Positions 198 through 28,007 of a stretch of DNA of 34,449 bases are shown piece by piece. The stretch is from Ministeria vibrans ATCC 50519 (Eukaryota > Protista > Filasterea). Each line of letters begins with the position of its first letter. Position 1 is the first letter of the stretch. A program made the position numbers and the translations under genes. The notes below the pieces were generated by a model. The model ran no database searches. It had not been told where the DNA came from and saw only the letters and a program-made list of their open reading frames with translations. The DNA lies in assembly GCA_943704425.1 (NCBI GenBank), contig CALSCP010002616.1, positions 1-34,449 on the forward strand, in the 5' to 3' direction.

Positions 198-3100
198 TCA
201 CCATTGAAGTGGAGCAATACCCAACGCGCCTTCAAGTTGGGTTTGTGCCGCAGAACTGGACACCGCTGAGACAGAGATGAGCGGAGGCGAGTGGAAGAGT
301 GGTGTGGACTCATCGCTGAGTGTGTGTTGAGTGGCAGCGCCAACAATGACACAACATTTGCTTCCAGAGGGCGGCAGTGGCACGGGCGGACGGAGGCCCT
401 GAGAAATCCAAGTCGAGTGCTATACATAAATAGTGGACGAAATCAACAAAAGTAAATGATTATTAGTAGTAGGTAGTAAGTAGTGTATTATTTTCAATTC
501 TTCGTACCTCGACAAGATCGTAACCACAAGCACGAGACACCCACGATGCAAGGAACGTTTTCCAGGGCGCGAGATCAATTGAAATGAGGTGAGGAACGGC
601 TAGGCTGCGTCGCACGCGGAGAAAAAAGACTCCCGAGTGCAGCTCTAAAATGTGCAGGATCGATGCGCCATACTGAACAAGAGATTCTTGAGCATCGTGA
701 CTCAACTGCGACGGAAGGCGCGCTCCGACGAGAGCGAGCGATGGAAATTTGTGACAGGCGTAGTCAAGGACATTGGAGGCAATCTATGTAAGAAAAAAAA
801 AACCAAACAAACAAACAAACAAACAAACAAACAAACAAAACAATATTTCAACGTCAGCAAAATTCGGCAAACACATTGACAACGTCTCTTACTATGCGCC
901 CCTCAAAGAGTGTCAAAATAAGGCCATGTTCGGAGCCACAAGCGTACGTTTGAAGCACGTGCGTTTTTTCGAGTTGTGGATGTTCGCGTAGGTGGCGACT
1001 CAGATGCGCAGCTGAGAAAAGTAGCGTCGCACCCTCACCAGTGCCAGTCTGACGCGCACGGCACACAGCTGGAAAAGTGAGCGTGTCCAGTTGAATTGGA
1101 GCGTCTTGTTGCGCAGGATCGAGCGCGACGTCACTCAAAGCAACCGTCTCCAGCGCGGTACGACCAGGGGAATGTTTGAAATTGCACCAGCGCTTCAGAT
1201 GAACCAAGACATATTTCTAAGGAAATAATAAAGTCGAGGTTAGAATCCATGGAGACTACCAACAAACGTCACAAAATCCATCGCAATTCTTTCTTCTGAC
1301 CAGATACGAATGTGTCTGGAGAACGTCAGAAACACGCGCTGTGGCCAGCTCGAGCGCTTGGGGGTTATCAGAGGGAGCGGACTGAAGCGGGCGGTGAGAG
1401 AGGCGCGCCGACAAGTAGCGCACGCTCTTGTGCAGCGCAGTGGTAATCCAAGTGCGCACAAATGCGCCCCAGTAGCGAGACGGCACAGTAGTCGAAAGAC
1501 GCTAAAAAAAAAGAAACAGAAGTATGACATATATAAGAATGCAAAGGCTGATGTTTCATTTTTGAGTACCTGACTGAAGACTGTTGAGTCGTGGTCATTC
1601 ATCTCAACGATGTACGGAACAATCTCCTGCGTCTATGAGCAAGCGATCAAAATTAATGCTATCCTTTTCCATGACAATACCACAATACTCATCAAACAAT
1701 AGAATACTATAATAATAATAATAATAATAATAATAATAATAATAATAATAATAATAATAATAATAATAATAATAATAATAATAATAATAATAATAATAAT
1801 AATAATAATAATAATAANNNNNNNNNAATAATAATAATAATAATAATAATAATAATAATAATAATAATAATAATAATAATAATAATAATAATAATAATAA
1901 TAATAATAATAATAATAATAATAATAATAATAATAACTTATAACCTACCTCAGGGTCGGTCGAAAGGATGATGTCAAGACCAATAGCGTCGAGAGCGGCG
2001 CGCGGGGCAACCGAGGGATCGACTAGAGCGTCGCAGGGTGCCAACAGAGCTTGTAGACACTGTTCCGAGTCATGCTTGATGCGAGCAAGCAGAGAATCGC
2101 GTTGGCTCAGCGGGACACTGCAAAAGTTGGCAAACTCGTCAAAGGGCATGGGAAAGGTATTGTGTCCGCCAATGGGCTCTGAGCCCCGACCAATACCGCA
2201 CGCAGGGTCGCAAGCACGCACTTCGTCAGTGGGAGTTCGCTGGACAACGACACGCAGCCGATGTGCACGTCGATCCGCGCTCGCCCACTCAATCCGCCCA
2301 TCTTCCTCTAGTTGCTTCTTGACCGCCCGGTCAAACTCTGTTCGGTTCGAGGGCGGAGTGCAATCAATAGAGAGGATAAACTCTTCCAAAAGAACACCCT
2401 CGCCTGGATCCAGCTACAAAGAATAACAATTAGCGATAGCTGCAATATAAACAGTCTTCGTCCGCATCTTACACGAAAAGCAAGAGCGTGCACTGCCTCG
2501 ACAATGCCACTGAGGTCCGTCGTCTGGTGGAAGGAGACGCCTTGCGACTGAGACCAAGTGGCGCCACTTGGTTTCACCACAATGCGTGTGCTGGTAGCGT
2601 TGGCAAGGAACTCGCGTATGTTCTCCGTAAACAGTTTGGGAGTGGCAAGGCGATCGGTGAAATGATGGACAGTCATGCGTGGGGGGAGCGACTTGAATGC
2701 GGCAGGGTTTTTGGCACAGAAAAGGAGCGCAAGGGTCCTGGCAAAGTTGACGTTGGTTGACTCCGCCAACAGTTGTCGACTGTACAGCTTGTCGCCTACG
2801 AGCAAATTCATCTGTGGCGATGCCGAAATAGGCGTGTGCACACCCTATACACAAAAAAAGAAGAAAAGAAAAATTCAGAAGAGAAAACAAGTCACAAAAT
2901 TAATAATAATAAGAAACTTATTATAATGATAGAAGAGAAACAAGAGCAGCAGGGTGCTTCGATGATTCTTTTATTAAAAAGAAGAAGAATACAAACCCAT
3001 GCAACCCATGTATTATTGCTTCAAAAGAACAGAGTAAATACAACAGAGCAGTAGACTGAACCGTGACAGTCTCATGCAATGCACAACACACACCCAAAAC

Positions 3101-3952
3101 AATAATAGTTGGCGTACCGTTTCATAGACAACGCCACCATCGTTCCAACCTTCCGTCATGGTAAAGGTAAACATGTTGACAAAGTAGGTGACCAGCCGTG
3201 GAGGTTGGTAGTGTCGCAGCGTGGCCTGGCCACACTCGTCAAACGATATGCCTGTGTTGCAGTAGAGCGCAGCAAGAGTGTCGTCGGGCGAGTCGCGTTG
3301 TTTCTCCAGCCAGCTTGGACAGACCACAAGAAGCACATTTCCTACAGAGTACCATCACAGAAAAACACAAAATTAATATTATTATTATTATTATTATTAT
3401 TATTATTATTATTATTATAATAATAATAATAATAAAATTAATAATAATAATTATTATTTTTATTTTCTTATTTAAATGGTTGGAACGTTGACAAAACGAA
3501 AGACACGAAAGGAGAAAAGAGAGAAAAGCAAAGGAAGGAAAGAGCGTATAGAGTGCTGTACTCAACAGTGCCAACGCATGCGGCAATACACAACGGAAGG
3601 GGCGCGGCGATGACACGATGGCGTGTTGTTCGTGAGACACAGCAGAGAGAAGAAAGAAGACGAAGGAAGGAAAACACTGACCGGAACTCTGTCGGCCTCC
3701 CTCGAGAAGGTGCGACATGCGCATGCCGCCACACATTGACATAAAGACAACAGTAGGCTCGGGGCGCGCGGGCGGGCGGCAGGGTGCCGTGGATTCGTCG
3801 TGCAGCGGCGGAAGACCCGCAAGTTCAAGATCAACACGAAAGTTCTTCAACATCATCTCGCGACTCTTGGAGGAGCCCGGAACGAGTTTCTCCGGCGCCT
3901 TTAGCCACTCTTCGTAGTCCTTCATGCATCGCGTCGACAGTTTGGACGACAT
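198..3952 (-). CDS. Carnosine synthase (CARNS1)-like double ATP-grasp protein, paralog A (N-terminal ATP-grasp intact, C-terminal degenerate)
   Basis: Hand-spliced GT-AG exons 3952-3682, 3341-3118, 2844-2473, 2413-1949, 1632-1570, 1501-1301 (weak donor), 1216-893, 783-508 and 419-198 keep frame. The protein reads LLEGGRQSSGNVLLVVCPSWLEK...YQPPRLVTYF...GDKLYSRQLLA...VVKPSG...GVLLEEF...LDIIL...IVEMNDHD, matching the CARNS1 N-terminal half (LLEGGVQSPGNMLLCLSPAWL, FVPPRRATYF, ELN). The C-terminal half is a recognisable but decayed ATP-grasp (YACGSEH, PHLISIDLAP, GLRP). Confidence 0.85.
1709..1936. repeat. (AAT)n microsatellite in an intron of paralog A, containing a 10-N gap
   Basis: Seen directly. 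Shorter (AAT/TAT)n tracts also occur near 3380, 16345, 22200 and 25995. Confidence 0.97.
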
Positions 3953-27300: not shown

Positions 27301-28007
27301 CGTGTGTCCACGGTTCCGAGCACATTGTTGACATTGCCGTGTACGAAGGGAAAATGGTGTTTGGCTCGGTGAGCGACGTGGGACACGATGTGCTCAAGCG
27401 ATTTGCCTCGCGTGCCATTGCCATGCCCGGTTCCCTCTCACTGCACGAGCACGAGTCGCTGTGCACAGCCGTGCTGGTGAGCCTGCGTCGCCTTGACCTC
27501 ATGACGGGAGTGTACTCGGCGAGCTGTCGTTTGTCAGCGCGTGGACCTCGCGTTGTCGACATTTGTGTCGGCCTTGGAAGCGGTCCGTCTGTTGCGTTTT
27601 GCCGCGCCGTGTGGGGCGTTGACTTTGTCTCGCTCGGCATGCAGTTGGCCCTGGGCATTCGACCCCATCGCTTGATCTGGGGTGCTGTGCCGAATCCTGA
27701 GAAGGCCCCCATGCACTGTGTCGCAGTGGAGGTGTCCAACACCCTTGCGGCAAGCGCCGAGGCATTCCTCGAGGATGTCCCCTCAACAACAACCTCACCA
27801 CCATCCAACGTCAACCTCTTCCTCATCGACGCCCACATGCCGCTTCTGAGCAGTTTTGACAAGGAGCGCTCGGCCAAGCAGGCGAGCCACACCTCTGCCG
27901 TCGAAGAGGCTCCCCGCAGCTACCTTGTGTGCACCTCGAACAGCTTTGAGACTGCTCGCATTCGTCTTCTGGCGACCACCCGTGTGCTTGACACTGTCAT
28001 CGAATAA
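24333..28007 (+). CDS. Carnosine synthase (CARNS1)-like double ATP-grasp protein, paralog C (N-terminal ATP-grasp intact, C-terminal degenerate)
   Basis: Exons 24333-24521, 24665-25001, 25088-25326, 25483-25974, 26076-26360, 26472-26621 and 26715-28007 are in frame. Motifs LLFEGGRMCPGDFFVALSPEWIEKVP, FQPPRLVTYF, ALAFTYEP, VVKPSGYRW, DSVLVEDFIYP, QTDSLGLDFIL and LIEVNDHD. The C-terminal domain has GSEHIVD and VSD but reads GPRVVDICVGLGSG in place of GPRLIEINxRMGG. Confidence 0.9.

Follow-up and report, generated by a model that had tools for sequence, protein, structure and literature searches.

Carnosine synthase (CARNS1) is treated as a one-site enzyme whose N-terminal half is unexplained, and a literature search for a second CARNS1 site found nothing. 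The vertebrate enzyme, also known as ATPGD1, goes back to Drozak et al. 2010 as cited in PMC11591149 and PMC9235088, and the latter also cites a report of CARNS1 as a homotetramer. The peptidases DmpA and BapA are reported to hydrolyse carnosine, and each has also served for its synthesis from activated β-alanine donors (PMC9235088); the literature search found no link between the DmpA/BapA family and CARNS1-like ligases. Here we describe three CARNS1-like genes, A, B and C, in a stretch of 34,449 nucleotides from the filasterean Ministeria vibrans ATCC 50519 (contig CALSCP010002616.1, our C2616; the whole stretch is called the window below). Both halves of these proteins are ATP-grasp ligase modules, of different kinds, and their inactivation is reciprocal: A and C keep the catalytic residues of the N-terminal module (N-module) and have lost those of the C-terminal module (C-module), whereas B keeps those of the C-module. 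On a slight balance of probability, the best explanation as a whole is that a two-step synthesis of β-alanyl peptides has been split between these paralogs.

Reciprocal loss of catalytic residues

We searched the assembly to which the window belongs (GCA_943704425.1; 29.7 Mb in 2860 contigs) for paralogs. The first-pass annotation had counted three, but the genome has six (A–F). D (contig C498) has both modules intact. E (C803) and F (C2121) have only an intact N-module (N-only type), like A and C, and B is the genome's only copy of the opposite, C-only type, which gives a ratio of four N-only copies to one. D, E and F are not clustered with B or with the peptidase (S58) and decarboxylase (PanP-like) genes that accompany it in the window.

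Catalytic residues were compared in an alignment of 58 two-module sequences, comprising 53 relatives of 780–1160 amino acids (aa) and our local models of A–E, with columns read against D. The positions are, in order, Lys, hinge Glu, Arg, Asp and Glu-x-Asn in the N-module and Lys, hinge Glu, Glu and Glu-x-Asn-x-Arg in the C-module. D reads KERDEN in the first and KEEENR in the second; A reads KERDEN and RERSDA, C reads KERDEN and GESDCG, and B reads KERDDS and KEEENR. The catalytic Lys, Asp/Glu and ExN of the N-module are present in A and C and not in B, which has D-x-S; among the three, only B has the Lys, hinge Glu, Glu and ExNxR of the C-module. Reciprocal inactivation of A and C versus B is thereby established. 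The first-pass annotation had described A and C in these terms, and the homologous columns agree; aligned with CARNS1 and its relatives, the degenerate domains have lost the Lys, Glu and ExNxR (RERSDA in A, GESDCG in C) or the ExN (DxS in B). Its description of B as the mirror image holds for the decayed ExN of the N-module and the intact C-module; the Lys and Asp of the N-module are still kept.

Rates of divergence follow the same pattern. The N-only proteins are 32%–54% identical to each other and to intact relatives in the N-module and 18%–29% in the C-module, and the N-modules of A and C are 32%–47% identical to relatives. For B the order is reversed, with 18%–25% in the N-module (to the other sequences compared) and 33%–39% in the C-module (to C-intact relatives). 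Pairs with both sites intact show 37%–47% and 41%–46%, respectively. This domain-specific acceleration matches the pattern of reciprocal inactivation.

Gene structures were derived locally. A family hidden Markov model (HMM) was built from six full-length homologs and matched exon by exon to the window genes; frame-preserving GT/GC...AG pairs between neighbouring exon matches were then considered, and the joined peptide was scored against the profile. The joined models of A–F were used for local alignments and trees only; for searches and folding, the input was a single exon or an intronless homolog. The family HMM is matched by exons of A, B and C with E-values of 1e-9 to 1e-52 over profile positions ~35–967. 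The motifs were located by a six-frame scan of the window, in which all those quoted in the first-pass annotation were found in place; since they lie inside HMM-matching exons and in homologous columns of the 58-sequence alignment, they are not chance strings.

B (951 aa; 4433-7706, plus strand) has the exons 4433-4660, 4780-6394, 6547-6959, 7032-7247 and 7323-7703 plus the stop, and its four introns all have ordinary donors and pyrimidine-rich acceptors. In its N-module, the Lys is kept in VVVKGCG (5203-5223) and the Asp in LAVDMIL (5899-5919), and the ExN position has decayed to DVS within VLDVSG (5950-5967). The C-module motifs KPEYG (6717-6731), GSEHDVD (the hinge; 6876-6902), NVEMKM (7155-7172) and EINARMGG (7197-7220) are all intact. 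Pfam searches of the C-terminal exons gave ATPgrasp_N (15.6 bits), ATP-grasp_4 and ATPgrasp_Ter, all below the curated cut-offs on single exons, and no LAL_C2 match in the last exon. For the N-terminal exon, a word-indexed protein search gave no match, and a phmmer search of the PDB returned nothing above noise.

C (~990 aa; 24333-28007, plus strand) was modelled from HMM exon matches in the same way, with exons at 24333-24521, 24665-25001, 25088-25314 (or 25326), 25483 (or 25501)-25974, 26076-26360, 26472-26621 and 26715-28004 plus the stop. All six introns are canonical GT-AG, with pyrimidine-rich acceptors, and restore an open frame. The N-module has an intact VVKPSG (25522-25539), Asp in LGLDFIL (26274-26294) and ExN in EVNDHD (26331-26348). 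The last exon (26715-28004) encodes a dead module of the L-amino-acid-ligase type, 430 aa long, in which Lys has become Gly in PLVVGLNS (27165-27188), Glu has become Ser in SASCRL (27516-27533) and ExNxR reads DICVG within VDICVGL (27555-27575); the hinge GSEH (27309-27335) is kept.

A (~792 aa; 3952-198, minus strand) was modelled from HMM exon matches and GT-AG junction scoring. Its nine exons are 3952-3682, 3341-3118, 2844-2473, 2413-1949, 1626-1570, 1501-~1334 (where no donor is convincing), 1216-893, 783-508 and 419-201, with the stop at 198-200. Seven of the eight introns are clean, with canonical GT-AG sites that restore the open frame; at the exon 6/7 junction (~1501-1216), no donor like the genome's others does so. 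A 43-nt intron candidate at this junction was rejected because it creates a stop. The N-module keeps the ATP-binding lysine motif VVKPSG (2563-2580), the Asp in IGLDIIL before the ExN (1964-1984) and the metal-binding ExN in EMNDHD (1588-1605). The C-module is dead: the EINxR position is SIDLA within ISIDLAP (565-585), the upstream Glu position falls in FLRVRR (607-624) and the Lys position is R in FPAVCRARQ (1049-1075). The substitution of the C-module lysine by R or G, as first annotated, is thus borne out in A and C. A is the shortest copy, and the pre-ATP-grasp part of its C-module, much shorter than in C or D, is mostly missing. Pfam gave no match in any exon of A or C. Intron 4 of A (1627-1948) contains long trinucleotide microsatellites, which read as poly-Leu, poly-Tyr or poly-Ile by frame, and a gap of 9 N (1818-1826), the third run of N in the window.

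Family history and predicted folds

The 766-aa exon of D retrieved 3127 relatives at E <= 0.001 in a full HMMER search (phmmer), and named CARNS1 proteins of bat, eel, frog and bowfin were among the family returned. In the tree, A, B and C fall inside the CARNS1/ATPGD1-like two-module family, with which they are homologous over their whole length. Both sites are intact in 26 of the 58 two-module sequences, a group that includes bacterial, protist-like and one chiton sequence, this last a CARNS1-like protein. The N-module site is lost and the C-module site intact in 17, the reverse (N-module intact, C-module changed) is seen in 12, and three have lost both. In 7 of those 12, just one residue is substituted, for example Glu by Asp (P0003, P0009, P0010, P0052, P0053, P0127, P0141). 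The named vertebrate CARNS1 proteins belong with the sequences that have lost the N-module site: the eel, frog and bowfin proteins (P0021, P0025, P0031) have no N-module ExN, whereas that of bat (P0023) keeps the Lys, Asp and ExN and has lost the PSG loop, so decay of the N-module within vertebrates is uneven. As both sites are kept in D and in relatives among bacteria, protists and invertebrates, the ancestral enzyme very probably had two working sites, and, as the residues read, either site has been lost repeatedly in the family. Within its first ~30 residues, the bacterial two-site homolog P0005 shows an apparent signal peptide and then an Ala/Pro-rich stretch, which is odd for an ATP-dependent ligase.

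Judged by its placement in the trees, the N-only type is old and includes intact foreign proteins. The whole-protein tree unites A, C and E with the foreign protein P0064 (100% support in the Shimodaira-Hasegawa-like approximate likelihood ratio test, SH-aLRT), and a tree of the C-module only recovers a single, long-branched clade (99%) of A, C, E, F, P0064, P0176 and P0083; the branches of A and C are the longest in the trees. Tara Oceans metagenome scaffolds are the source of P0176 and P0083, and neither contig has a C-only neighbour. The trees neither supported nor rejected a grouping of B with P0024 and P0030, foreign proteins of the C-only type. P0024 is found on single-ORF (open reading frame) contigs of ~3 kb (L017, L018, L019), six contigs from three listed sequencing runs, which look like transcripts and hint that the C-only type is expressed in that organism.

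Dead modules are kept by selection in these relatives, as judged from foreign pairs. P0176 and P0083 are 64% identical in the live module and 57% in the dead one, and in the C-only pair P0024/L007up the ratio of nonsynonymous to synonymous substitution rates (dN/dS) is 0.064 for the dead N-module and 0.094 for the live C-module.

As the N-modules of A and C are split by introns, the N-module of P0064, an intronless member of the N-only clade, was folded instead with AlphaFold2, from a 54-row alignment that included exons of A–F. The model is confident (pLDDT, the predicted local distance difference test, 90.4; pTM, the predicted template modelling score, 0.89), and at least the best 500 Foldseek matches in the PDB have E <= 0.001, those listed being almost all ATP-grasp enzymes. 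With the VIA aligner, the best matches were LysX/ArgX (Z 22.3), RimK (Z 22.2), DcsG (Z 22.1) and the glutathione synthetase GshB (Z 21.3), each with the whole target chain covered; matches of this kind span Z 22.3–20.8 over 269–293 residues. The N-module is therefore predicted, by way of this homolog, to be a complete ATP-grasp fold of the RimK/LysX/GshB kind. Sequence kinship is invisible or marginal, so this assignment draws on predicted structure: the N-modules had no Pfam match, whether to RimK, GSH-S_ATP or any other model, P0005 gave sub-threshold matches to ATPgrasp_YheCD and ATPgrasp_ST (E ~2e-3), and an N-module profile searched against PDB sequences gave a single weak match, to GshAB (3LN6, E 0.88).

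The C-module is of another kind. The dead module of C (26715-28004) gave an AlphaFold2 model (pLDDT 81.6, pTM 0.87) whose best structural match is the L-amino-acid ligase BL00235 (3vot_B; Z 32.0, root-mean-square deviation 3.1 over 359 residues), with PurK, BacD/YwfE and RizA next, so that the module is predicted to keep its L-amino-acid-ligase fold despite the lost catalytic residues. The structure modelling that the first-pass annotation had called for thus returns an ATP-grasp fold both for the N-module, through P0064, and for this dead module. Mammalian CARNS1 matches BL00235 and BacD in the PDB by sequence, with no close relative among the PDB sequences searched, and bacterial relatives such as P0005 carry the Pfam pre-ATP-grasp, ATP-grasp_4 and LAL_C2 domains. 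Dead modules of this family answer to the description of pseudo-enzymes in that their residues are lost, the fold is kept (predicted, for C) and purifying selection is seen, on foreign pairs only.

Gene neighbourhood and a possible division of labour

A and B lie head to head, 480 bp apart. Convergent with B is an intron-bearing Peptidase_S58 gene of the DmpA/BapA family (8481-9976, minus strand; PF03576 with E-values of 9e-36, 2e-17 and 4e-3 on three exons), the only S58 copy found when the genome itself was searched. Head to head with C is a pyridoxal phosphate-dependent decarboxylase (Pfam Pyridoxal_deC; 21645-23185, minus strand) resembling PanP, an aspartate 1-decarboxylase. Three of its exons score 203, 70 and 60 bits against TIGR03799, well above other decarboxylase models, and it is the genome's best PanP match. 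The three ligase genes and the two beside them (PanP-like, S58) fit within 28 kb, joined across two gaps. A similar arrangement is found on a foreign contig (L007, 6.9 kb, 1-6946), where a C-only ligase, an S58 peptidase and the N-only P0064 follow one another in tandem on one strand. The N-module of this C-only ligase reads IRVHDHD, its C-module is intact, and the S58 peptidase is 39%–57% identical to that of the window; PanP was not seen on these 6.9 kb. Both ligase genes of the contig are intronless, and its S58 gene possibly starts upstream with an intron. Elsewhere in the family, the C-only P0030 adjoins an M20 peptidase (L014:133-1632) and the bacterial two-site P0005 an M28 peptidase (L013:11358-12659), with nothing else found in bacterial neighbourhoods; these neighbours suggest a recurrent pairing of ligase and peptidase.

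The adjacency of C-only and N-only genes here and, with S58 between them, on the foreign contig argues for a functional partnership, while the PanP-like gene beside C and the DmpA-family peptidase beside B give the locus its β-alanine theme and make β-alanyl peptide synthesis the most likely job of the ligases. Three observations support a shared pathway for C-only and N-only proteins: the two modules are almost universally fused, the two types are adjacent in two distant genomes, and their neighbours are β-alanine-related. A division of labour among the paralogs is plausible on this evidence. That the family goes back to a fusion of two different ATP-grasp ligases is established, and in this genome their activities have been parcelled out: B would have only the dipeptide-forming site, A, C, E and F only the RimK/GshB-like site, and D both. 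C-modules, being of the L-amino-acid-ligase kind that includes CARNS1, would make a dipeptide from free amino acids, and N-modules, of the RimK/LysX/glutathione-synthetase kind, would add an amino acid to the carboxylate of an existing peptide or protein. In a first step, B would activate the carboxylate of a free amino acid (β-alanine in CARNS1) to give a dipeptide; in a second, the site of the N-only paralogs would ligate a residue onto the peptide carboxylate to give a tripeptide or longer product. The PanP-type decarboxylase would be the likely source of β-alanine, the DmpA-family β-aminopeptidase would take the product apart, and the dead modules would be retained as folded pseudo-enzyme domains. 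The sequences fit either order of the steps, and the reverse, with X-Y first formed by the N-module and β-alanine attached afterwards by the C-module, would give the same product.

Several observations weigh against this split pathway. D keeps both sites, so split enzymes are not required for the pathway; the N-only copies outnumber the C-only one by four to one; and D, E and F are unlinked to the cluster. The earlier proposal that an ancestral bifunctional enzyme had been split up accordingly keeps its two-site ancestor and loses its simple split. The trees do not demonstrate orthology between B and the C-only proteins of foreign origin, so that the N-only/C-only pairing possibly arose twice or is coincidental. 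The N-module of B may retain residual activity, given that the ExN has changed only to DxS and the Lys and Asp are kept. By its gene model, the dead module of A has lost most of the pre-ATP-grasp part, and this partial deletion, together with the splice junction that has no convincing donor, indicates that A may be degenerating. The PanP assignment draws on exon-wise scores that, singly and in their rough sum of ~330 bits, fall short of the whole-protein cut-off of 606 bits.

Linkage is a further point on the same side. Gaps of 59 N occupy homologous positions in two intronless OSCA/TMEM63-type ORFs (Pfam RSN1_TM, PHM7_cyt, RSN1_7TM), 12417-12475 in the first (11822-14029) and 19721-19779 in the second (19096-21390), and the two copies are 92%–97% identical in DNA. 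As both gaps lie inside OSCA genes, the ligase genes are untouched by them. The join of the A, B and S58 segment (1-12416) to that with PanP and C (19780-34449) rests on scaffolding through this repeat, and both gaps have to be crossed to connect the two segments. Either the OSCA gene was recently duplicated in tandem or the assembly is at fault here, and scaffold order across both copies is uncertain. The window as a whole has a G+C content of ~50% and genes with short GT-AG introns; it also contains a 304-aa ORF (32304-33218, minus strand) with a hydrophobic, membrane-like look and no Pfam match, and ends on the right in a fragment of a TPR-repeat gene (34071-34421, minus strand).

The alternative that survives best is independent neofunctionalisation. 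The N-only paralogs A, C, E and F would then carry out a ligation unrelated to the product of B, for instance a RimK-, TTL- or LysX-like addition to the C-terminus of a protein or carrier, and the clustering would reflect tandem duplication or shared regulation. RimK, LysX/ArgX and TTL, the nearest structural relatives, do modify proteins and not free dipeptides, and the copy numbers, the dispersal of D, E and F away from B, S58 and PanP, and the P0176 and P0083 contigs without a C-only neighbour all fit. However, fusion of the modules prevails across the family, from bacteria to molluscs, and speaks for coupled reactions, the trio of C-only ligase, S58 and N-only ligase recurs on the foreign contig, and the dead L-amino-acid-ligase module has been retained instead of shed. 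We regard this alternative as unlikely, though of real weight.

A refinement of the split pathway, which it does not displace, would have the dead modules dock N-only and C-only subunits in an obligate mixed tetramer that channels the intermediate. RimK and GshB are known tetramers and CARNS1 is reported to be one, the dead modules of foreign pairs are under purifying selection, that of C keeps its predicted fold, and the ligase genes are adjacent in two genomes. Self-assembly, regulation or substrate binding could account equally well for selection on dead modules, and an assembly of this sort strikes us as rather improbable. That A, and perhaps C as well, is a duplicate that is dying or no longer functional, the reciprocal pattern being a snapshot of pseudogenisation, would suit the shortness and aberrant junction of A, the blindness of Pfam to both and their long branches, but is very unlikely, given seven other introns of A and all six of C that are canonical and restore the frame, N-modules that keep all six key residues at 32%–47% identity to relatives, an old N-only clade with intact foreign members and a dead module in C that still gives a confident predicted fold.

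Beyond two-step synthesis in this genome, a broader proposal can be framed. The CARNS1 family might ancestrally be a synthetase of tripeptides or longer peptides whose N-terminal site has been overlooked; marine protists might repeatedly have split the steps between cooperating half-dead paralogs; and the cluster, with its decarboxylase, β-aminopeptidase and mechanosensitive channels, might make and release a β-alanyl peptide osmolyte. We offer this as speculation, more doubtful than probable. If it were true, the same logic would explain mollusc tripeptides such as β-Ala-Orn-Orn, as mollusc CARNS1-like proteins keep both sites (the chiton protein above). This tripeptide, brought in by the first-pass annotation, is sound as chemistry: it is acorbine (PMC13256729).

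Comparison with known systems

Three features of the locus bear on enzymes described elsewhere. By predicted fold, the N-terminal half of the family is a full ATP-grasp ligase; bacteria, protists and molluscs have its catalytic residues intact, and a conserved N-only subfamily has intact residues at this site only. It follows, as a testable implication for the carnosine-synthase family as a whole, that the N-terminal half would be a second ligase, which would make these proteins a candidate enzyme class for orphan β-alanyl tripeptides. The paralogs also offer a clear-cut natural case in which a fused enzyme has been reciprocally subfunctionalised and its pseudo-domains retained, and the locus may exemplify pathway clustering in a protist genome.

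Among enzymes of the neighbourhood, DmpA and BapA belong to the family (PF03576) that the S58 gene matches, and members of that family hydrolyse and can synthesise carnosine and β-peptides (PMC9235088); the window gene is an intron-bearing eukaryotic copy whose specificity is putative only. For the N-module, RimK, LysX/ArgX, GshB and DcsG are the best fold matches and have the K...D...ExN pattern in common with it, but there is no significant sequence match, and the N-module has large inserts and an extra N-terminal region. For the C-module, the best relatives of solved structure are BL00235 (3VOT), BacD/YwfE (3VMM, 3WNZ) and RizA, with fold Z-scores of 32.0 to 25.6; these are single-module enzymes, and the copies in A and C are without the Lys, Glu and ExNxR that they need. 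GshF (3LN6) combines a γ-glutamylcysteine ligase and an ATP-grasp glutathione synthetase and so, like the proposed ancestor, places two ligation steps on one polypeptide and yields a tripeptide, although only its second module is ATP-grasp. We know of no fused two-step peptide synthetase such as GshF that has been reciprocally split into half-dead paralogs.

CARNS1 itself is a close relative. The live N-module and dead C-module of A and C form a pattern not described for CARNS1, B is only ~33% identical to it in the C-module, and the mammalian N-module keeps its K, D and ExN. In other respects the correspondence is close: A, B, C and CARNS1 share a family, a two-module architecture and a length, the C-module of CARNS1 has the same K...E...EINxRMGG as that of B, and the N-module residues of fish and frog CARNS1 are degraded, as they are in B.

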